Shown here in pieces: positions 24,601-54,200 of a stretch of 64,000 nt of DNA. Within the stretch, counting starts at the first letter, position 1. Every line of letters begins with the position of its first letter. The translations under genes were made by a program, and so were the position numbers. The DNA is from Oculina patagonica. Lineage: Eukaryota. The notes under the pieces were generated by a model. That model was not told where the DNA came from and did not search any database. It was given only the letters and a program-made list of their open reading frames with translations. The stretch covers positions 28,334,001-28,398,000 of the forward strand of contig NC_135766.1 of NCBI RefSeq assembly GCF_052425735.1, in the 5' to 3' direction.

Positions 24601-26032
24601 AAAAATAAAAATCGAATTTATAGTTGTATATTTCTTCGTGTGTAACCCTAAACGAGACCATTATGACTAAAAATATTGGCGTTTTGCCAGAACACCCTAA
24701 GCGAGACCAAAAATCTGAAATTTAAACCCCTAAGCGAGACGACGAGCATCCCCGTCACTTTCATATGCGAGTCCCCCCCCCCCCCCCGGGAGCTACATCT
24801 ACAGTCTAAATTGTCGTACAGCAAGTACATGCGACAAGGCAGTTTAAGAAGATCGTAAAAGACATTTCAAATGAAAAGGAGCTTCCAAAGATCTTGAAAA
24901 GACCTATTAGTTAGTTAGTAGCACTGACTCATACGAACATTAACCTGTTTCACAAAAGGATCTGTTGCGTAAGGCTGCTGCTGGAATGTCCCATTTGGCA
25001 GGGTTTGTTGATCATTGAGGCCAAGCTGCTGATATCTTGACCAAAGCCGTTCCACTTCGGCTACTGGAACTAAAAAAAAAACACAAAAACAAAAATAAAC
25101 AACAATGATATAACCACCAGTTTCAGTTTAACAAATATTTGTCAAACTCTTGTACAAATTTTTTGCAGATTTTCCCAGCACACATTTTGATATCTGTATT
25201 GATGGAAATGCGGCCTATGGCAGTTCAATTTTGACTAAAACTTCAATCAGTGTCTCTTAGGCAACGTATTTAGGTTAAATCACTTGACATAGGTGACAAA
25301 TTTTGCCAGTTGGTTCCTATTGAAACCTGAGAGAAAGTTTGGGAGAATTCAAAAATTTATATGACAATAAGCAGTTCAACACCCAAAATGTAAACAAATT
25401 TGAAAACTTATTTTTGGGATCCGAAATGTTTGTAAACAACCAATTGTACACTGTACCCTCAGGTACAAACAACAAACAAGTGTACACTGTAACCCTTGTG
25501 ATCAACTGCTCGATTTTAGAATAAGACAAAAGATAAGTTTACAATAGTATTTTAACCACTTGTGCACAACCAGAAACCCCATTCTTGTGATAGTAATCTG
25601 TACCTTTCCCAATTTCACTTCCTAAGCAAGACGTCATTGGCAGATTTTTTGATTCAGTATTATCAAACGTTTCTTCGCCAATCGAACTCAGAGTTGGCGG
25701 CGGAGGTATAGAATTTGTTGGCGTGACAGGATCTTTCTTTGAGAAAAGAGAAAATCGCCGAAAAAAGCTCATTTTCACAGAGAAGTTGGCGCGCGCGGTG
25801 GGGGTAAGCTTACTGTATCTGCTATAGCTGTTTGTTTATTATAAATTATGATTACAGTCATATTGTACATACCAGCATATTCCTCAAGGGCCGTTGGATT
25901 AGTTCTTTCAAACAAAGGCTTCAACACTTCTTCCAAAGAGTTCAAAGGTTGTTCTTGATCTGTGCTTCCCTCCTCTCCGACATCTCTCGCCTGTTCGGGT
26001 TGCTGTTTGTTTTTCTTCCAAAACTTGAGCAT
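18674..26032 (-). CDS. Calcineurin B/CHP-like EF-hand protein with C-terminal death domain (~307 aa, 7 exons)
   Basis: Exons 25873-26032, 24945-25069, 23714-23819, 22521-22609, 21707-21764, 19650-19770 and 18674-18938 join in frame at GT-AG sites. CHP/CnB-like segments: EVERLWSRYQQL, DPFVKQIWRTF..DENGNVTFHSF, PLDKRLAGIFKLL, LDDKDQGYIDVDQW. Death domain: IAGKIGERDWTPLARELGFTKHEI..QVYQVLVLWRQK..ATADAL. Confidence 0.85.
19870..20626. mobile_element. Non-autonomous element with terminal long branched hairpin (Crypton-like, tentative)
   Basis: attctgattgg motif near one end and a ~100-bp hairpin (20520-20619) at the other; same architecture at 61333-62530. Confidence 0.55.
20688..21036. mobile_element. 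MITE with TTAA TSD and AG termini (Kolobok-like)
   Basis: TIRs agatgaattccagtccgtactgcgca / tgcgcaatacggactggaaatcagct; TTAA on both sides. Confidence 0.75.
21964..22375. mobile_element. MITE, CCCAGGGG family, 8-bp TSD
   Basis: Near-identical to 6182-6599; TSD aacaatac. Confidence 0.88.
22621..22796. repeat. 176-bp near-perfect palindrome containing a hammerhead-like core (Penelope-type inverted end)
   Basis: Arms are reverse complements apart from about two differences; CTGATGA-a-GGTGA-acagatg-TCACC-GAAA at 22720-22748. Confidence 0.75.
24430..24790. mobile_element. MITE, CCCGG-poly(G) family, 8-bp TSD
   Basis: TIRs cccggaggggg..gactc / gagtcccc..ccggg; TSD agctacat. Confidence 0.82.
25604..25772 (-). 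CDS. Putative alternative first coding exon of the EF-hand/death-domain gene
   Basis: ATG-initiated MSFFRRFSLFSKKDPVTPTNSIPPPP...GSEIGK ends in a phase-1 AAG|GTACAG donor, matching the phase of exon 24945-25069. Confidence 0.5.
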
Positions 26033-26196
26033 TTAGGACAAGTATCTCAATACAGCGAAAAGTTCTCTTTGGTACTGAATTAATAGTAGGCCTGTTCAAT
26101 TATCCATTGCTCATTTTCTTGCAAATTTTTTATACTCTTGGGAAAAGTTTTGTGTAAATCGCAACTCGCCGCCATTTTTTTGTTTTGCATTTCCTG

Positions 26197-26212: not shown

Positions 26213-26628
26213 GTTCTAAGCACCGCTGATCAGAGGGTGCGACTACTGCGATCTGTTTTGGATATTTTGCTACATCAAACAGGCTGTTAGAGTTGTGAGC
26301 CCGGTAAAGACCAGGTAAAGACTCTGTAAAAGGCAAGATTATTGTAATTTTAACTAAATATGTGGTTGAATGTAGTTTTAATCACTCAGAAATATTAATT
26401 TGTTGCTTTGTTCTGTTAAAATGTTACAAAGGGCCCTGCCAGATATTTGGCTATATCATCAACCCAAACATTTTGCAACAACTAAGCCCAGTTTGTTGTT
26501 ATAATTCTCATATCGTTAATTTAAAATAATAATGACACTCGTGCTGCATTATCTTGTTTATTTCAATAGAAATTAGGATAAGGATCACCAAGGGTCACAG
26601 GACGCCCAGGTCCAGTACCTTCAACGCA

Positions 26629-28113
26629 ATGTTCTGGTCTCAGCTGATGCAATTGTGCCAAAAAGCTCCTGTTTGGTTCATTGGTGTCCTTGGAGCTATT
26701 ATTATTTACACAATCCAACAGCTTATCATGGGATATGAGTTTCCGACAATCTGGATCTCTGTAGTGTTAACAGTGGTTTTTATTGCCACCATTGTCAAGA
26801 TGCTGATCTCAGTGCTCAGGACTCGTGTCATTTTCATTGACATGCCTGACCCCGACAACTATGCTGCTGTCTTGCTGCGTGCACATCAATCAAAAGAGAT
26901 TAACAACTGGCTGGCAGTGGTGGGTAGATGGGTGTTACAGAGATTGGGTCACCCTCTGTGTCCACTCTACATTGTCTGCGGCGGACGGCGTGTTAACCTA
27001 GGCTTAGCCCACAAGAACACAACCGAAAGATTTTTTGATCAATCAACAAAGACATGGTTGGAGTGGGACTTTCATCGACATATTGGTCCGCTCCCTGCAG
27101 ATGAAGCTATCATGAAGGATCCAAAGACAGTTGAAGACTCTGCCTTAGTTCTAAAGAAAAACATGTTTGATCTGGACTGCATCTTACAGACGGCTGGGTA
27201 TTCAGATTATGTCCTAGTGAAAGGACATATCGCCAAGCAGATACCATTGTCTTATTCACATCATGCAGATGAATGGCGTTTCTACAATAATGTCGAGAAG
27301 CACTGGGTCACGACAAATGAGTATGACCAACTGTCTGATGAACGCTGTAATGAATTTTACAAATTTCAGGACTTTGACCAGCGAAGGAAACTGGCACGTC
27401 ATTCTATGAACCAATTAACTGGTGTCTCTAATTTTGAGTCAAGTTCCACTGGCTCACACTGGTTAAGCTTAGACCAACTTCACAAACTGCTGCTGAAGTA
27501 TATGACCATTGACATCACAATGGCTGGTCCAGCAACTGACATGGCATACTTAGTAGATAAGTCATTAAATTGGACTCGGAATGTGAGAAAAATAAATGCA
27601 ATGTGGGCAGTCTGTGAACTGGGTCCAAACACCGGCAAGATGAACGTATGTGGGTTGAACTTTAATGAGGCAGCAGATGTTCAGGCTGCACAATACCTAT
27701 CTTCTAAACACTTCCCCAATGCCGCGTTTTCTTTCTTACCCACTGAGACATGCAAACTGACGCCGCAATTTAAAGTGACATGCAAGATGGCCGAGCGCAT
27801 TGATGTGTTGCGATGTCTTGTGGATAAAATAGCTCTTTGGACTCATGTTAAAGGTGGACAAACTGAACCGCTGTTTGACTATTTCATCTGTGAATCCTTA
27901 GATATTACAACAACATTGCAGAAGATGGGTCTTGTCAAAGTCTTTGTGATCCCGAACGCTGATAAGGGTTACATGATTTTGTCGCCCAGTACAAATGAAA
28001 CATTGTTCACTGCCTGGGTGAACCCAAGTGAAATGTTCAGGGTTTTCAGCTGGGGGCAAAATAACATTTCTTTCAATGGATCTCACTGGTCCAGTGCCAA
28101 AGTTGTTGGTTAA
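26629..28113 (+). CDS. Intronless membrane-anchored protein with divergent IU-nucleoside-hydrolase-like fold (~494 aa)
   Basis: Long open ORF whose first ATG (26629) follows a splice acceptor at ~26568. Two N-terminal hydrophobic helices, then IDMPDPDN (cf. DxDxxxDD), AGPATDMA (cf. GPLTNLA), NFNEAADVQAA (cf. EFN..DPEAA) and PLFDY (cf. LHDP). AATAAA at ~28152. Confidence 0.72.
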   Translation: MFWSQLMQLCQKAPVWFIGVLGAIIIYTIQQLIMGYEFPTIWISVVLTVVFIATIVKMLISVLRTRVIFIDMPDPDNYAAVLLRAHQSKEINNWLAVVGRWVLQRLGHPLCPLYIVCGGRRVNLGLAHKNTTERFFDQSTKTWLEWDFHRHIGPLPADEAIMKDPKTVEDSALVLKKNMFDLDCILQTAGYSDYVLVKGHIAKQIPLSYSHHADEWRFYNNVEKHWVTTNEYDQLSDERCNEFYKFQDFDQRRKLARHSMNQLTGVSNFESSSTGSHWLSLDQLHKLLLKYMTIDITMAGPATDMAYLVDKSLNWTRNVRKINAMWAVCELGPNTGKMNVCGLNFNEAADVQAAQYLSSKHFPNAAFSFLPTETCKLTPQFKVTCKMAERIDVLRCLVDKIALWTHVKGGQTEPLFDYFICESLDITTTLQKMGLVKVFVIPNADKGYMILSPSTNETLFTAWVNPSEMFRVFSWGQNNISFNGSHWSSAKVVG

Positions 28114-28209
28114 GATGCTGGTGGCTTCCTCATTAGATCTCATTATTTTGAAATAAATAAAGTTGATCTTACATCTGTTATTGTGTTTTCTGGATACCCA
28201 AAGTGAGTA

Positions 28210-28416
28210 CCTTATTGTTACTTATTTTTGTGGGAACATAATTTCGCAAAATGGCACGGGACTTAATTTTCGCGATTTTGCCAAAAATATGTAATCAACA
28301 TAAAAAAATACCCGTACAATAGAAAACGCTTAAAATGAATTTTCACGGGTCTTTAATTTTCGCGATTTTTTGAAAGTCGCGAAAATTAAGTCCCATGAAA
28401 ATAAGTCACAATAAGG
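28210..28416. mobile_element. TA-flanked MITE (CCTTATT family)
   Basis: TIRs ccttattgttacttatt / aataagtcacaataagg; related to 46576-47091. Confidence 0.7.
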
Positions 28417-30179
28417 TAAGTGTGTGAGTGTGGGTGGGTGGGAGGGAGGAAGGAAGCTAAGAGGGATTGGGCTTGAGAGGGAGGGAGTGAGCTCGGGGGA
28501 GGGGGGGGGACTCGAAAAAGTTTTGTACGGGGAGGCCCCGCCCGGAGATCTAACCCCTTACCCTCTTATATACCATTTTGATAGAAAAGGTACCCCTTTT
28601 GTATACCTTTTATTGCTAAAAGGCACCCCTTTCAAATACCTAGACGACTTCACGTTTACCTAAAACGGGAGGTTTTCTTGTCATTTTTATGTAGCGCTTA
28701 ATAAATTAAGACGATACAGCCAAAAGTTGCGTCTGCTCAAAATATTTAATGCAAAGGCCTTTTAAAATATCAGTATGGCAGATTTCCCTACCCTTTTATA
28801 TACCTAAACTTGTGAAATCCCTTCCCTTTTAAATACCTGAGCCTGAAAAAGGTACCCCTTTCGGGCGGAGCCTCCCCGTATAGGCCAATATAGGGAGTGA
28901 GTACTGGAGGAACTCCCACAATTAAAAAGATGACAGGGGTGCTCGTTGGAAATTATCAAGAACCCCCGAGAAAAGGTACCACAGTCTCACTCTAGGGTGT
29001 GGCTCAATTTCATTGTCACCCCTATTAAAGGAGACCAAAAATCTGTTAAGACAGAGTAACAAATTGTTCCCGTCTTTTTTTGCTCAATACCCTAAAAGAT
29101 GCTGCAATAACTCAAACGGTGGTCTTTTTAAATTTTTACAACCTAAGCAGTACCAATCTACAAAGTCCAGGCCCACCTAGCAGGGATCTAGGAGCGAGAA
29201 TAGTCCTGGTTGTCAATGTCTCGTACTAAAATCAATAGAGAAATAATAATTTATTGATGTGCTCACCACTGAAAAATTCCTATATTTTGTCCAACTGTTC
29301 ATTATTTGTAGGCATGTACATGACATGACCGGCTGCTAAAAGCATCACTGGGGAGGTATCCGGGACAAAATGTGTTCCCATACACAAGGTAGCAAATTCT
29401 TTACAGACTATGCCGCTGGTCATTAGATGCTACTGCGATCTTCAAGGAAAAAAAAAACAACGGGAAAAACGAACGAAAATCGGATGTTTGTCAGACCAGG
29501 GATTTCTCCATGTTCAGAGGTAATTGTTGTCACATTCATGGAATATTTCGCTGCAGTTCTAATGTTAATTTTTTTTGCCTTAAAACCTAAAAATTGTGAA
29601 GTTTGTATTTTTGGTTCTGTGACTGAACTTGATCGGTGGTTCAAGAACAAAGTACTTGATCAGTCAGAAGTCTCACATAAAATAAAAGCTTACATGTAGG
29701 AATGTAGCCCTTTCGCTCTTTTGAAGTATGCCCATTATAAGCTTGTTGATCTTTGAAGCATATCGATCTAAAGGAAAAGTTTATGACTCACTAATCTGTT
29801 CACTGACTCTGTTGTACAGAAGCATCAGTCATCATTTATTCCAGTAAAAAAGCCCCCCCCCCCCCCTTCCCTCTACAATCAGGTCCCTCAACCCAGGTGG
29901 ACATAGGATGCAAATATTCAGAAATTGCATACACTGTTGGAGCTTAAAAGTGTAGCAGAAATCAAGGGTTAAATGTTTTGTCAAGGGGGGCCAATTGATG
30001 TAACAGTACTGTAGTGACTTGAAATTTTCTGTGTCTAATGACGGAAGGTGCCTGCTGTTTTTAGGCTGCCTAACAAGAATATTACCAGCTACTGTGAAGC
30101 TAAGAGAAACTAAACTGTTATCAACTGTTTCTCAGGTAACAAATACAGTATATTATTATCATATTATTGGTCTATAAAT

Positions 30180-33458: not shown

Positions 33459-34493
33459 TTACCTGACTTTACTGCAAAACACTTTCCTTACAAACGATCT
33501 GAAATCGCTCATCTGTACAAGATAAATGATGAAGTTTAGGGCACTGTTTGAAAAGAACATTACAATCGTAAGACATCTTGTTCTATAATCTGATTCAAAA
33601 TCAAGAGAAGGTTTAACCAACATTACATAGGTTGCATAATAGAGTGACGAAGAATAAGGAATAATGAAAGCAAACGTAATTGCAATTAGGAGATATGTTC
33701 CACGGAGTTTTGCTGCCCTCAATTTCGCCTTGATGGCGTTGTTCATCTGAATATTCAATACTCTTTTCCTGTTTCTAGTCCATACGGTTTTTATCAGCGA
33801 AATGTTAATAAAACTCAAGATAAGGCTAGGTAAAATGTGTTGTAGTAGTACATAACTTATAAATATCAGTCGGAACGGTAAATTACTGTTGTCAATTTTA
33901 CAGACAATAGTGTAATGTGTTTCGTCGAGATCGAATCTAATCCCGTTGAACGCCCCCGCGGGTACACATACGAGGAGAAACCCTACAATCCAAGTACCAA
34001 ACACGAGCCTGCGAACAGTAGAGACGCTAAACGTGCGGGGTATAGCCCGAGTTGAAAAATATCTCTCTGTACTTATCGCTATTAAATTATTCATTGTAAT
34101 TGAGGGAAATAACATGTTAAGATATCGAACTGTCTTGCACGCCCAACCATACTGAAAAAGGTCAAACATCAATTGGACATAAACTAAAGGGAGAGAAATT
34201 ATGTTGGAAAGTATATCCGAAAGGGCTAAACTCTTAACATAAAAGTGAAAATTTCTTATAAAAGGACTTGACTGCAAATATGACAGTGTTTTACTTTTTG
34301 ATGAAATAAAATAATAAATGAGGCTATTGCCCACAAAACCAACAGTTCCAACAATGGCCAATAATAAGAAGACCACTAGTTTAGTAGTAGAACTTGCTGG
34401 TATGAACACATAATCTCGACTTGCGTCTGTGTTGTTAAGCATAGCAGACTGGTTGTTGGTAAAGAGATTGGGCGACAGCGGCGAACCGCCCAT
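33459..34493 (-). CDS. Orphan rhodopsin-like (class A) GPCR, single coding exon
   Basis: Seven hydrophobic segments with GN in TM1, LALSD, C..ERY, W in TM4 and NFIIY (NPxxY variant). ATG at 34493 lies just downstream of an acceptor at 34503. Confidence 0.9.
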   Translation of the reverse strand: MGGSPLSPNLFTNNQSAMLNNTDASRDYVFIPASSTTKLVVFLLLAIVGTVGFVGNSLIYYFISSKSKTLSYLQSSPFIRNFHFYVKSLALSDILSNIISLPLVYVQLMFDLFQYGWACKTVRYLNMLFPSITMNNLIAISTERYFSTRAIPRTFSVSTVRRLVFGTWIVGFLLVCVPAGAFNGIRFDLDETHYTIVCKIDNSNLPFRLIFISYVLLQHILPSLILSFINISLIKTVWTRNRKRVLNIQMNNAIKAKLRAAKLRGTYLLIAITFAFIIPYSSSLYYATYVMLVKPSLDFESDYRTRCLTIVMFFSNSALNFIIYLVQMSDFRSFVRKVFCSKVR

Positions 34494-51200: not shown

Positions 51201-54200
51201 GCCAACACCTGACATCCCAGGAGCAGGCCCGTCTAAAGCCTAGTCGCGATAGATTTGTCCACAGCTGGTTGTTTGACAAGATGCTCAACTTTTGCCATAA
51301 AACGGAAATTGCTTGGCTGGTTTATGAGGAAGGAAAGGGCATGTTTTGCTATCTGTGCAAGAAACACAACACAGAAAATCAATAAAACAAGTCCAAGGTT
51401 TATAATGCAACCCCGTGCATACGCTTTAAGAAGTCAGCTGTTCAAGAACATTTAGCAACTCAGCAACACAAGGATGCTGTTGGAGCTGAAATGTTAGCAA
51501 GGGTGTCAGTGTTTCATAAAGAGATACAGGAAAGGAAAATAGTGAAAGATGATGTCATGTTTAAGGCTTTCTATGCGGCATACTGGCTTGTCAAAGAGGA
51601 AATTTCCAACCAAAAGTTTTCATCTCTTCTAGATCTGCTTAAATTGCTTGGGCTCGATCACATGAAGCATTTCCAGTATTCTTCACAGGGTTCTTTAAGA
51701 GAAATCTTTTTGGCACTGGGCTCTGCATTGCTCGAAAAGTTGTTGGAAAAGGTGAAGAAAGCAGGCTGCTATGGCTTGCTTACTGATGAAGTCAGTGATG
51801 TTACAGTCATGGAAATGCTTATCACCTTCATCCAGTACTTCAACAAAGAAACAGAGCAAGCTGAGACAAGCTTCTTGTTTATCGAAGACGTTCTAAAGAA
51901 CTCCAATTCAGCCAATGCAGAAACCATCTTTACAGTCCTCACAAGCCAGCTAGCTGAGTTTGGTCCAGAGATACAGAAGTGCAGTTCATTGGTTTCAGAT
52001 GGTGCAAGTGTTATGACCGGTGCATGTGGTGGAGTGGCAACCCGTCTGAAGCAACTTAATCCTCAAATGATTTCTCTGCACTGCTTGTGCCATAAGCTTG
52101 CATTAGCCTGCACCGACACTAGCAGCCAAATAGAATACATACGAAATGTTGAGCTCTGGCTAAGGCAGCTTTGGAAACTGTTTGAAAATTCACCGAAGCG
52201 TACAGCAACGTACTTGAAAGTACAAATAAATTTGAAATCCTTAGTCCTCTCTGATAAGAGTAAGAAGGTTGTAACAAAGAAGATAAAGAAGGCCTGCCAG
52301 ACCAGATGGCTGTCTTTTGATGCAGCTACAAGTGCCATTTATGAAGATTACAATGCATTATTGCAGACTTTAAGGCAGCTGAAAGAGACTGATGCAGTCG
52401 CTTCTGGCCTCCTCAGCAAGATAGATTCCTCCAAGTTTATTGGAACAATTTACATTCTTAAAGAAATTCTTCCTGTCCTTTCCAACTTGAGCAAGAACTT
52501 TCAACGTGGGCAAGTCAACTTCTCACACATCCAGCCGTCCATTAGTTACACCTTGCAGAAGCTGACTGAAATTGCAGATTCCCAGTCCCCAATAACAGCC
52601 CTGAAGCGAGACATAGAAGGACGCCTGGCTATATCTGGGGTAAACTTGAGTACTGCCACAGAAAATCAGCTTACCAATCTTCTTTCAAAATATGTTACAG
52701 CCCTGAAGGAGAACATTCACCACCGGTTTGATGATGATCTCCCTGTTGTCAGTGCCTTGTCCATTTTCAACCCATTGACCTTGCCCAAGCCAGGGTCTGG
52801 TGCATTTAAGGAGCACGGAGCAAATAAGGCACAGACATTGGCAAAGCACTTCTTCAGTGAACCAGCCAAACAAGAGCAGCTACTAGCTGAATGGGAGAAA
52901 TTTAAATTTGATATGGATGCTTGGAAGCAAGAGATCCCAGAAGAGGTGAAGGAGAGCCACCTTGAAACAGCAACAGAGTGGTGCCTTAAACGACTGATCT
53001 CTCTCAAGACATCTTACAGCATTGTGTTTCCTGCTCTGACAAACATTGCTGAAGTCTGTTTGTCAATGCCCGTTTCTAACGCATGGCCGGAAAGAGGTGG
53101 CAGCGCCCTGAAACGTATCAAGACTCGGCTGAGAAACCGACTAAATGTTACCATGCTCCAGTCACTTCTAATGGTCTCTATTAATGGTCCCAAGGTCGGA
53201 ACCACAGAATGTGAATCCCTAGTCACAGCCGCAGTGGAGAAGTGGCAAGCCCAGAAAAAGAGGCGAAAAATGCCTAAGGCAGTGTCGTCAACCTCAGTTG
53301 CAGCCTCTTCCTCCACACAAGTGGCTGTGATTGAGACAGCTGATGCCTGTGTGCAAACACACCCGCCCCAGGCTCACCCCGCTGGTGATAATAGAGATGG
53401 AGAATTAGAGGTGCAGATTGCTAGTGCCGCCCTGAACCTGACCGATGATGCTTTGTGCCAAGAAGAAGCAGACTCTGATTATGATAGTGATTGTGACGTC
53501 GACGATGTTGATGATGCCTTACTTTTCTAAATTACATGACTTGGTTTTGATTTTGTTCTATAGAATAGTCTATCAAATTGAAGCATAAAGAACTGAAACA
53601 ATCAAATTGTTTGTAACACTAGCACAGACAAAGGACTTTTATCTTTTTACTGTACCTTCCCAAAGCAAATTGTTTGTGAATCAAATTGCAATTAACTTTT
53701 AAAACGTGACTAGGCAGCGTGATGTAAAATAAGACTGAGCTAAATTTGTCAAAGAACAACAAGTTGAACTTTTTAAGTGGATTTTTCACTGAATTTTACC
53801 ATAATGAACATCTGAAAATTCCCCTTGAAAACATGCTCAGATTGCAGGAAATGGCCTCTAAGCAACTGTATATTTCAAAAATTTCTGGGGGAGCATGCCC
53901 CAAGACCCCCCTAGAAGGGGGCGCTTTGCGCCCCAAAACGCACACTTCGCGTGCTAGATGATCTACTAGCCGGCTATTCTATTGACATCAGCCGGCTACT
54001 ATAAATTCTAATGACAACCCTGCGTTTAATCGAGAAAATACGACGAAGTCAACAAACACAACAGAGAGTTTCTCTGGTTGATTAAAAATCCTCACTGAAA
54101 TAAAGTAAAAAAGTGAAATAGCATAATCGTAACATTGGTTGGTATTGCGTCTGGCTTTTTCTTTCTTTCTTTCTTTTTTTTTTTTTGGGGGGGGGGGGGT

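Follow-up and report, generated by a model that had tools for sequence, protein, structure and literature searches.

How a stony coral came to carry an intronless gene for a highly divergent nucleoside hydrolase (NH)-like protein, and what such a protein might do, are the questions raised by the locus analysed here. The window, that is the whole 64-kb stretch of coral DNA used for the analysis, contains a complete single-exon coding sequence at positions 26629..28113 of the plus strand, which in the ORF list encodes 494 amino acids followed by a TAA stop. The uninterrupted frame extends over 26554-28113(+), with the first ATG at 26629 and the stop at 28111-28113. Only two ORFs of at least 350 amino acids were found in the six frames of the window, so that a frame of 494 codons is far beyond chance. 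The uninterrupted coding sequence of 1.5 kb reported in a preliminary description of this DNA is thus confirmed as an intact ORF. The NH-like gene is single-copy in the 529-Mb coral genome and is located on a 32-Mb chromosome-scale contig.

Analysis of RNA data revealed contigs over the NH-like gene from about 26568 to 28207, where they end past two overlapping AATAAA polyadenylation signals read from the sequence (28152..28161, plus strand; 39-48 nucleotides past the stop). The runs were taken as RNA because their contigs break at the splice donor of the neighbouring gene: in each of the four runs they end precisely at 25873, the end of the first exon of a divergently transcribed neighbour (25873..26122, minus strand; ATG at 26032), which closes with a GTATGT donor. 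This upstream neighbour was labelled as an EF-hand/death-domain gene by the first-stage annotation of the window. Upstream of the NH-like start codon, the sequence tatcttgtttatttcaatag (26550..26569, plus strand) holds a polypyrimidine-AG at 26557-26569 and is a candidate 3' splice acceptor of a 5'-UTR intron. Contigs of two RNA runs start at 26568 and 26574, and low-depth contigs from two runs span 26325-26597, through the candidate acceptor. The term intronless therefore covers the coding sequence, and an intron in the 5'-UTR could exist. The surrounding genes had been described as mostly rich in introns; this is true of the upstream neighbour, which is multi-exon, but an intronless GPCR ORF is present 5 kb downstream of the NH-like gene.

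Pfam profile PF01156 matched the protein with 16.7 bits (E 0.006) over amino acids 282-383 only, below the gathering cut-off of 34.2 bits, and a genome-wide PF01156 scan did not report the locus. Neither the protein alone nor the coral profile retrieved anything meaningful in sequence searches of PDB, and searches of NCBIfam, PADLOC and PHROGs were blank. Alignment of the subfamily to which the protein belongs (described below) with E. coli RihA by hhalign gave a probability of 90.8-92.3% over the motifs GPATD, NFNxxxD and PLFD, and two subfamily members just reach the PF01156 cut-off, with 34.2 and 34.8 bits. A first AlphaFold (AF2) model, for which only coral sequences were used, had a pLDDT of 60 and gave consistent but weak NH matches; it was superseded by a model from 53 sequences with a pLDDT of 86.4 and a pTM of 0.88. 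All of the top 50 PDB entries retrieved with this model by VIA-align are of NH fold (48 nucleoside hydrolases and the effectors 4kl0 and 4p5f), the best being YeiK (3mkn_D) with a Z of 21.4 over 262 aligned residues and an rmsd of 3.2 A, and the best Foldseek E-value was 8.2e-10. The preliminary description had proposed an NH fold and had named the prediction of another fold as grounds to abandon the proposal; in the modelled structure the NH fold is confirmed over the catalytic domain.

The four motifs on which that proposal was built occur in the protein in the order given: IDMPDPDN (amino acids 70-77), GPATDMA (300-306), NFNEAADVQAA (344-354) and PLFD (414-417). The aspartate motif had been called non-canonical, and rightly so, yet it proved to be the hallmark of a whole subfamily rather than of one gene. 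The coral sequence F69-I-D71-M-P-D74-P-D76-N77 does not carry the DxDxxxDD fingerprint; compared with it, the first aspartate is replaced by phenylalanine and Asp15 by asparagine, the loop is one residue longer and there is an extra invariant Asp74. The family-defining D-x-x-D-x-D-N motif (D71-M-P-D74-P-D76-N77; 26839..26859, plus strand) lies at the end of strand 1. This motif was found in 36 of the 36 full-length-type members checked, and D71, D74, D76 and N77 are invariant in the subfamily alignment. In canonical NHs, Asp10 is the catalytic base, Asp14 a ribose ligand and Asp15 a Ca2+ ligand. The N-terminal profile-profile alignment (hhalign) with canonical NHs is non-significant, and the motifs are equated instead through the register of structural alignments, in which model residue 64 falls on residue 4 of YeiK, 65 on residue 4 of 5tsq and 64 on residue 3 of TvNH. 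By this register of the model, D71 would correspond to the catalytic Asp10/11, D76 to Asp14 and N77 to Asp15.

After strand 2 the protein has G119-R120 (26983..26988, plus strand), with G119 invariant and R120 at least 90% conserved in the subfamily alignment. Topology, together with a non-significant hhalign match, suggests that this pair is equivalent to the canonical G-N39, a ribose contact. It is followed by an expanded region (amino acids ~121-290; 26989..27498, plus strand; pLDDT 79-97) that contains the invariant residues G199, S208, H212 and R252 and is without a counterpart in canonical NHs in the hhalign comparison. The distance from strand 2 to GPATD is ~180 residues, against ~90 in canonical enzymes. 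The large insertion previously noted after the aspartate motif is therefore real, but it is family-wide and not peculiar to this gene.

The remaining elements were aligned by hhalign. G300-P-A-T303-D (27526..27540, plus strand), which also lies in the partial Pfam match, corresponds to the canonical GPLTN containing Thr126, a backbone Ca2+ ligand, and P414-L-F416-D417 (27868..27879, plus strand) to the canonical P-L-H241-D242, the global alignment placing QPLFD onto aPlhD. Both of these Ca2+ ligands are accounted for, T303 aligning with GPQTN and D417 with PLHD; in the subfamily and wider alignments alike, D417 does not vary and T303 is at least 90% conserved. The position of the general acid His241, the mark of group I of the inosine-uridine NHs (IU-NHs), is taken by Phe416, which is invariant in the subfamily alignment and at least 90% conserved in the wider one. 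N344-F-N346-E-A-A-D350 (27658..27678, plus strand) is the counterpart of the ribose-binding loop E166-F-N168-x-x-x-D, with F345 and N346 invariant and D350 at least 90% conserved; the Glu166 position is occupied by Asn344 in the coral protein and by asparagine, cysteine or glutamine elsewhere in the subfamily. A further conserved family motif, P371-T-E-T-C-K376 (27739..27756, plus strand), has T372 invariant and K376 at least 90% conserved.

Comparison with canonical NHs (PF01156; YeiK/RihB, RihA, Crithidia/Leishmania IU-NH and Trypanosoma IAG-NH) revealed the same fold and the same order of active-site elements (Z 20-21; ~265 residues aligned; rmsd 3.2-3.9 A) at an identity of 10-15%. The equivalents of canonical Asp10, Asp14, Thr126, Asn168 and Asp242 are kept. 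Unlike canonical NHs, the coral protein possesses an expansion of ~90 residues with invariant Ser208, His212 and Arg252, and an N-terminal membrane anchor. The XopQ/HopQ1 effectors (4p5f and 4kl0) share the NH fold with an atypical ligand preference, and 4p5f is solved with ADP-ribose. They match the model at a Z of 18.4-18.9, against 19-21 for canonical enzymes; these proteins are secreted bacterial effectors without the subfamily motifs, and PDB sequence searches found no sequence match that would indicate specific kinship beyond the shared fold. The closest cellular folds, above canonical NHs, are the AlphaFold DB proteins A0A6A5TGX7, A0A6A6INN1, A0A6A5R0P0 and A0A4Q4T416 (E 3e-15 to 9e-12; TM 0.5-0.6; 14-16% identity), and Ascomycota proteins of 431 amino acids that form a cluster in ESM-Atlas gave a TM of 0.60/0.68 over 358 residues. 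These uncharacterised proteins are probably from ascomycetes, and the coral sequence profile did not reach them at E <1e-3.

Two hydrophobic helices precede the catalytic domain and both are helical in the AF2 model. Helix 1 (amino acids 13-33; 26665..26727, plus strand) is a weak transmembrane segment or signal-anchor with a Kyte-Doolittle peak of 1.63, clearing the threshold only marginally, and is found in most coral orthologues. Helix 2 (amino acids 38-62; 26740..26814, plus strand) clears it easily with a peak of 2.66, is a strong transmembrane anchor and is followed by R64 and R66. From the positive-inside rule, the C-terminal catalytic domain of ~430 residues would be cytosolic. The two transmembrane helices had been regarded as atypical for the family. 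Most viral members of the subfamily are without an anchor, but N-terminal membrane anchors recur in several non-coral members.

Sequence comparison places the protein in a coherent, unnamed NH subfamily from giant viruses, a few protists and corals. Its hallmarks are D-x-x-D-x-D-N, GGIAxxAGLSxxxH, GGPxT, NLLGxNFNxAxD, PTETCK and QPLFD, along with G-R after strand 2 and W...K, and the window protein carries the full set. The subfamily is monophyletic with respect to canonical NHs with a support of 100/100. An exhaustive HMMER scan of 1.84 billion cluster representatives yielded 42 matches, of which the coral ones form one cluster plus fragments and the others are viral, metagenomic or protist sequences with at most 27% identity. 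No orthologue from any other animal was present among these representatives, and neither were the intron-bearing animal orthologues that, according to the preliminary description, would have spoken against its view. A word search with the family profile found coral sequences only, and one with the Yasminevirus protein found four unnamed relatives. A pattern-based scan of IMG/VR detected no subfamily member, a blank that says little given the method; its sole match, on a high-GC phage contig, was rejected as a chance match. A literature search found nothing on a DxxDxDN subfamily or on NH transfer to corals.

The viral member from Yasminevirus sp. GU-2018 (VBB18754.1/A0A5K0UB75) carries every hallmark motif together with the expanded region, and is the best viral structural match in BFVD (E 1e-17; TM 0.56/0.66); identity between the coral protein and viral members is 21-27%. 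VBB18754.1 is annotated as 'putative Dynactin subunit 4'. The annotation is erroneous and goes back to a chimeric Pocillopora gene model in which the NH-like gene is fused to the neighbouring dynactin p62 gene. Other members occur on dense, giant-virus-like metagenomic contigs that carry Rpb2, ribonucleotide reductase, AsnS, XRN and YqaJ, on a contig with CysRS and RNA ligase, and on further contigs with IF4E, histone or ankyrin genes. Protist members in EukProt are few. One of them is fused to EF-hands.

Intronless orthologues with 61-88% identity were found in other stony corals, among them intact single ORFs at a Pocillopora-like locus (L001) and at a second coral locus (L002). Among the three coral loci, dN/dS is 0.10-0.16 at a dS of 1.1-2.0. 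The NH-like gene is a genuine, expressed coral gene maintained by selection; flanking coral genes, conserved upstream synteny, the poly(A) signal, RNA contigs and purifying selection all support its integration in the host. Conservation of neighbours among coral loci is partial, since dynactin p62 follows the gene on its downstream side at L001 only and not in the window, and the head-to-head EF-hand neighbour, whose exons are colinear at L001, was not found within 8 kb at L002. A range restricted to Scleractinia is suggested by database silence, and a single coral match carries a species name (Pocillopora damicornis).

Our analysis favours lateral acquisition from a virus or protist pool by an early scleractinian, in which the gene has remained single-copy and intronless ever since, at a probability of roughly 0.6. 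The argument for transfer comes from the distribution and not from nesting in a tree. The best non-coral matches are Yasminevirus and giant-virus-like contigs, a pattern that the preliminary description had tied to horizontal acquisition, and the distribution in cluster representatives is patchy, with absence from other cnidarians read from database silence. That part of the earlier suggestion holds, but the phylogeny names neither donor nor direction. The subfamily tree is a four-way polytomy with a coral stem of 1.57 substitutions per site, and a grouping of corals with the Yasminevirus clade is neither rejected nor demonstrated (p-AU 0.20). When a canonical outgroup is included, the coral clade becomes the sister group of the remaining members, with a support of 67/49 and a long-branch warning. 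This basal position, outside any viral clade, is what would be expected if an old eukaryotic gene had been captured by giant viruses, kept by corals and lost from the other sampled animals. Such vertical descent also agrees with the probable ascomycete proteins that are close in fold and with the existence of protist members, including the one with an EF-hand fusion, a combination typical of cellular proteins; these protist members and ascomycete-like folds imply that the family may have a longer history and a broader spread among eukaryotes than the sampling shows. We nevertheless regard vertical descent as unlikely, though deserving of some weight. It would demand that the gene was lost many times independently, in Metazoa at large and among the remaining Cnidaria; the 1.84 billion representatives gave no match from another animal; and the basal placement is weak and open to long-branch attraction. 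The coding sequence is moreover intronless at three of three coral loci, whereas the canonical coral NH genes and the neighbour have introns.

An intronless coding sequence of the same fold might also be produced by retroposition or fast evolution of a duplicate of the coral's own canonical NH gene, and retroposition had been raised as a source at the outset. This origin receives no support and is extremely improbable. The coral has three canonical NH genes, in tandem on another contig, each with a DCDAGIDD motif and two coding blocks; their products share ~12% identity with the NH-like protein (hhalign), group with E. coli RihA/B/C across the 100/100 branch and are separated from it by the longest branch of the tree. 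The derived motifs and the family-wide insertion are common instead to the viral and protist proteins, and no parent copy is present in the genome. With that split and no parent copy, a retroposed duplicate is effectively refuted. The fact that the closest non-coral relatives are viral could likewise point to contaminating DNA or to an endogenous giant virus inserted recently, which we consider scarcely credible. The gene lies inside the 32-Mb contig between coral genes, with upstream synteny kept in another coral; the 64-kb window holds no other viral-type ORFs; the gene has a poly(A) signal of eukaryotic type and is covered by RNA contigs; and identity to any viral protein is only ~21-27%. 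Orthologues at a dS above 1 are under purifying selection, and synteny and selection data together refute this explanation.

As to function, one or two N-terminal helices would anchor the protein in a membrane, the NH-fold domain forming its C-terminal part. In the proposed mechanism, Ca2+ and ribose would be bound by D71, D76, N77, T303, N346 and D417 in the roles of Asp10, Asp14, Asp15, Thr126, Asn168 and Asp242, and the protein probably still accommodates a ribosyl group and hydrolyses an N-ribosidic bond. The pocket would be rebuilt on its leaving-group and 5' side, with Phe416 for His241, Glu166 replaced by Asn344 and Arg120 at the Asn39 position; His212 and Arg252 (both invariant) and Lys376 (at least 90% conserved) are proposed as new conserved residues of the pocket. 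Such rebuilding suggests a substrate other than a plain nucleoside, and a 5'-phosphorylated or anionic riboside, such as a nucleotide, NMN/NAD or an ADP-ribose-like compound, is possible.

These same replacements (Asn for Asp15, Phe for the general acid His241 and Asn for Glu166), the PF01156 score below the cut-off and the match to XopQ-type effectors of the same fold would also suit a non-catalytic protein, one that is tethered to the membrane and senses or binds a ribosyl ligand. Such a role, rather than that of a hydrolase, has been proposed for XopQ/HopQ1, which bind ADP-ribose. We consider a binder of this kind doubtful for the coral protein. In corals, viruses and protists, the Asp that serves as catalytic base, the second Asp of the ribose site, the Asp metal ligand and the ribose Asn are invariant, and the Thr ligand is at least 90% conserved, which is the pattern expected for an active site under selection and argues against the loss of catalysis. 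A general-acid His is likewise missing from IAG-type NHs, in which aromatic residues take over its role. Going beyond the catalytic reading, the gene might be one for a giant-virus membrane-tethered hydrolase of a phosphorylated or signalling riboside (of NAD, ADP-ribose or cADPR type), domesticated by an early reef-building coral, sharing a bidirectional promoter with the EF-hand/death-domain gene in at least part of Scleractinia and forming a Ca2+-linked immune or cell-death module without counterpart in other animals, with the EF-hand fusion of the protist relative as a hint of such a Ca2+ link; this is a speculative and rather improbable proposal.

Overall, this study describes a branch of a well-studied enzyme fold that had gone unrecognised; the branch has its own active-site signature, occurs in giant viruses, protists and stony corals, and has a single named member, mis-annotated as a dynactin subunit. 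Cases of virus- or protist-to-animal transfer are rare and often contested, and the coral gene constitutes a testable candidate, kept under selection since deep in coral evolution. With a conserved metal and ribose site and a more basic remainder of the predicted pocket, the protein is a tractable target in the search for a new riboside-cleaving activity, which may be relevant to signalling by nucleotides or NAD derivatives, both in the cells of corals and during infection by giant viruses.

Six-frame analysis of the 64-kb window revealed only two ORFs longer than 350 aa, the nucleoside hydrolase (NH)-like gene and one other. The open frame of the NH-like gene spans 26554-28113(+), with the first ATG at 26629, 494 codons and a TAA stop at 28111-28113, and two overlapping AATAAA signals are present in the sequence at 28152-28161(+). 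The uninterrupted ORF of the preliminary description (26629-28113, plus strand) is present and all its motifs were found in the order stated there. The start codon at 26629 is supported by the orthologue alignment, where M1 and S4 hardly vary. The window also contains an intronless 347-aa ORF for a rhodopsin-family 7TM receptor at 33459-34502(-) (PF00001, E 3e-14), and a 679-aa ORF at 51491-53530(+) with a hAT-family dimerisation domain, which probably encodes a hAT transposase or derives from one by domestication.

The NH-like gene occurs as one copy in the 529-Mb assembly, inside a 32-Mb contig. A word-indexed protein search identified 17 relatives with 62-100% identity, the sole named one being Pocillopora damicornis pdam_00002599, which marks the window as stony-coral DNA. 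On megabase-scale contigs of other corals, a Pocillopora-like locus (L001) and a second locus (L002), the orthologue is likewise a single uninterrupted ORF. Pairwise dN/dS of 0.10-0.16 with dS of 1.1-2.0 indicates ancient coral orthologues that are subject to strong purifying selection. The divergent multi-exon gene upstream has colinear exons in the window and at L001; no such neighbour was found within 8 kb at L002, and dynactin p62 lies downstream of the gene in L001 only.

Expression was assessed with contigs of four public runs from three closely related organisms, labelled only "RNA?". These contigs tile 26568-28207 across the NH-like gene. Over the divergent neighbour, contig pieces end exactly at 25873 in all four runs, next to a GTATGT donor on the minus strand, and in one run two neighbouring contigs have overhangs of ~29-30 nt that fit removal of a very short, 51-nt GT-AG intron (25822-25872). 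On the basis of these contig stops and overhangs the runs were taken as RNA and the NH-like gene as transcribed. A polypyrimidine-AG at 26569 is a candidate end of a 5'-UTR intron; some contigs start there and low-depth contigs read through. The interval 25822-26122(-) takes in the first exon of the neighbour (25873-26122), with its ATG at 26032, and the 51-nt intron suggested by the RNA contigs, whose donor follows 25873. At most ~500 bp separate the 5' end of the neighbour from the start codon of the NH-like gene, which makes a bidirectional promoter likely. RNA contigs of two runs with the same species label lack 3 nt of the window sequence, in frame, at 27907-27909, in a variable stretch at ~aa 427. 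Just past the transcript end, at 28208-29000, summed RNA-contig depth climbs from ~15 to 250-9000, and joints and loose ends are numerous; the stretch resembles highly repeated short elements, with cgcgaaaattaagtcc-type inverted repeats and 'ccctttt(a)tatacct' units, which are probably MITE- or SINE-like.

The Pfam IU_nuc_hydro match to the protein scored 16.7 bits (aa 282-383), below the 34.2-bit threshold. A first structure model from coral sequences only was poor; the model from a 53-sequence family alignment reached pLDDT 86.4 and pTM 0.88. Foldseek comparison of this model with the PDB placed nucleoside hydrolases at 49 of the top 50 positions (best E-value 8.2e-10), the exception at rank 40 being the NH-fold effector XOO4466 (4kl0). 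VIA-align gave Z of 19-21.4 over 260-275 aligned residues (rmsd 3.2-4.0 A, model residues 64-468), and profile-profile alignment with E. coli RihA (probability 91-92%) paired GPATD with GPQTN, NFNEAAD with EFNIYVD and QPLFD with aPLHD. These three comparisons bear out the NH fold proposed from the sequence, which is established.

Searched exhaustively by HMMER with the coral profile, 1.84 billion cluster representatives yielded only 42 proteins at E <=1e-3. The non-coral proteins among them are 380-630 aa long and share 20-27% identity, yet can be aligned with the coral protein along the full length. Residues found to be invariant or near-invariant, numbered as in the window protein, are D71, D74, D76, N77, G119, R120, G199, S208, H212, R252, P301, T303, M325, G336, N339, F345, N346, D350, T372, K376, W404, P414, F416 and D417. 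The non-canonical Asp motif, large insertion and N-terminal transmembrane anchor described previously are all present but not unique: D-x-x-D-x-D-N occurs in 36 of 36 members checked, the insertion is family-wide, and hydrophobic anchors are shared by every coral member and at least seven from outside corals. They belong to a whole unnamed subfamily, which in the maximum-likelihood tree stands apart, with support of 100/100, from canonical NHs, both E. coli RihA/B/C and those of the coral itself.

Outside corals, one subfamily member is VBB18754.1 of Yasminevirus sp. GU-2018, the best structural match among viral proteins (E 1e-17), which is named "putative Dynactin subunit 4". It has no dynactin domain. 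The public Pocillopora model pdam_00002599 is a chimera of the NH-like gene and the dynactin subunit 4 (p62) gene next to it, a pair also present at L001:11451-17422, and the viral name was evidently transferred from this model. Another member lies on a 134-kb contig among genes for RNA polymerase Rpb2, asparagine synthase, YqaJ, a kinase, XRN, ribonucleotide reductase small subunit and helicases; another shares a contig with cysteinyl-tRNA synthetase, PI3-kinase and RNA ligase/kinase; and further members occur in dense arrays lacking introns, next to IF4E, histone, ankyrin or collagen-like genes. All of these neighbourhoods are those of giant viruses (Nucleocytoviricota). The protist proteomes of EukProt contributed a few members, of which one (P0049, 630 aa) carries EF-hand motifs at ~aa 96-155, N-terminal to the NH-like domain, a fusion worth noting since the divergent coral neighbour is described as an EF-hand/death-domain protein. 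By fold, the cellular proteins that come closest in AlphaFold DB and ESM Atlas are uncharacterised and apparently from ascomycetes; they rank over canonical NHs. A0A6A5R0P0 (AlphaFold DB, 576 aa), among the closest of them, is annotated with a pyoverdine/dityrosine biosynthesis (DIT1/PvcA-type) domain, a hint that these probably fungal relatives may belong to secondary-metabolite pathways.

The three canonical NH genes of the coral lie clustered in tandem on a different contig (G000:C3:19939011-19977608), each with two coding blocks and the DCDAGIDD and GPLTN motifs. Their products have Cys-Asp, not His-Asp, before the last Ca2+ ligand, as in a group-III-like NH. In the tree they group with bacterial Rih enzymes, apart from the NH-like gene, which excludes an origin of that gene from a resident NH by duplication or by retroposition, the latter having been offered previously as an option. 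Contamination or recent viral insertion is excluded by synteny, by selection and by the lack of other viral ORFs near the gene.

Among the 1.84 billion representatives, the subfamily was found in corals, giant viruses and protists and in no other animal. This distribution, together with the intronless CDS, favours lateral acquisition, which would have preceded the earliest divergence of the corals sampled. The tree topology lends the lateral origin suggested earlier no such support and leaves the donor unnamed: its four major clades are left as a polytomy, the stem leading to corals is long (1.57 substitutions per site), a distant outgroup places the coral clade basally with weak support of 67/49 and a long-branch warning, and a topology uniting corals and the Yasminevirus clade is only 2.2 log-likelihood units worse (p-AU 0.20). 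For these reasons vertical descent with massive loss stays a live rival. Overall, the preliminary interpretation was largely right.

Structural alignments start at model residue 64 or 65, facing residue 3-5 of several NHs. In this register D71 would be the catalytic-base and Ca2+-ligand Asp10/11, and D76-N77, at the start of helix 1, would correspond to Asp14-Asp15, with one extra loop residue and the additional invariant D74. T303, N346 and D417 match Thr126, Asn168 and Asp242 in the profile-profile alignment. That corals, viruses and protists all conserve these metal and ribose cradle residues speaks for the chemistry at the anomeric carbon having been kept. Unlike canonical NHs, the protein has Phe416 in place of the general-acid His241 and Asn344 in place of Glu166, a conserved Arg120 after strand 2 where the ribose-contacting Asn39 sits (a match by topology only), and invariant Ser208, His212 and Arg252 added by the subfamily expansion. 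Arg64 and Arg66 follow the second hydrophobic helix, suggesting that the catalytic domain may face the cytosol. From the residue changes we infer that the substrate would differ from that of canonical NHs and may be anionic.
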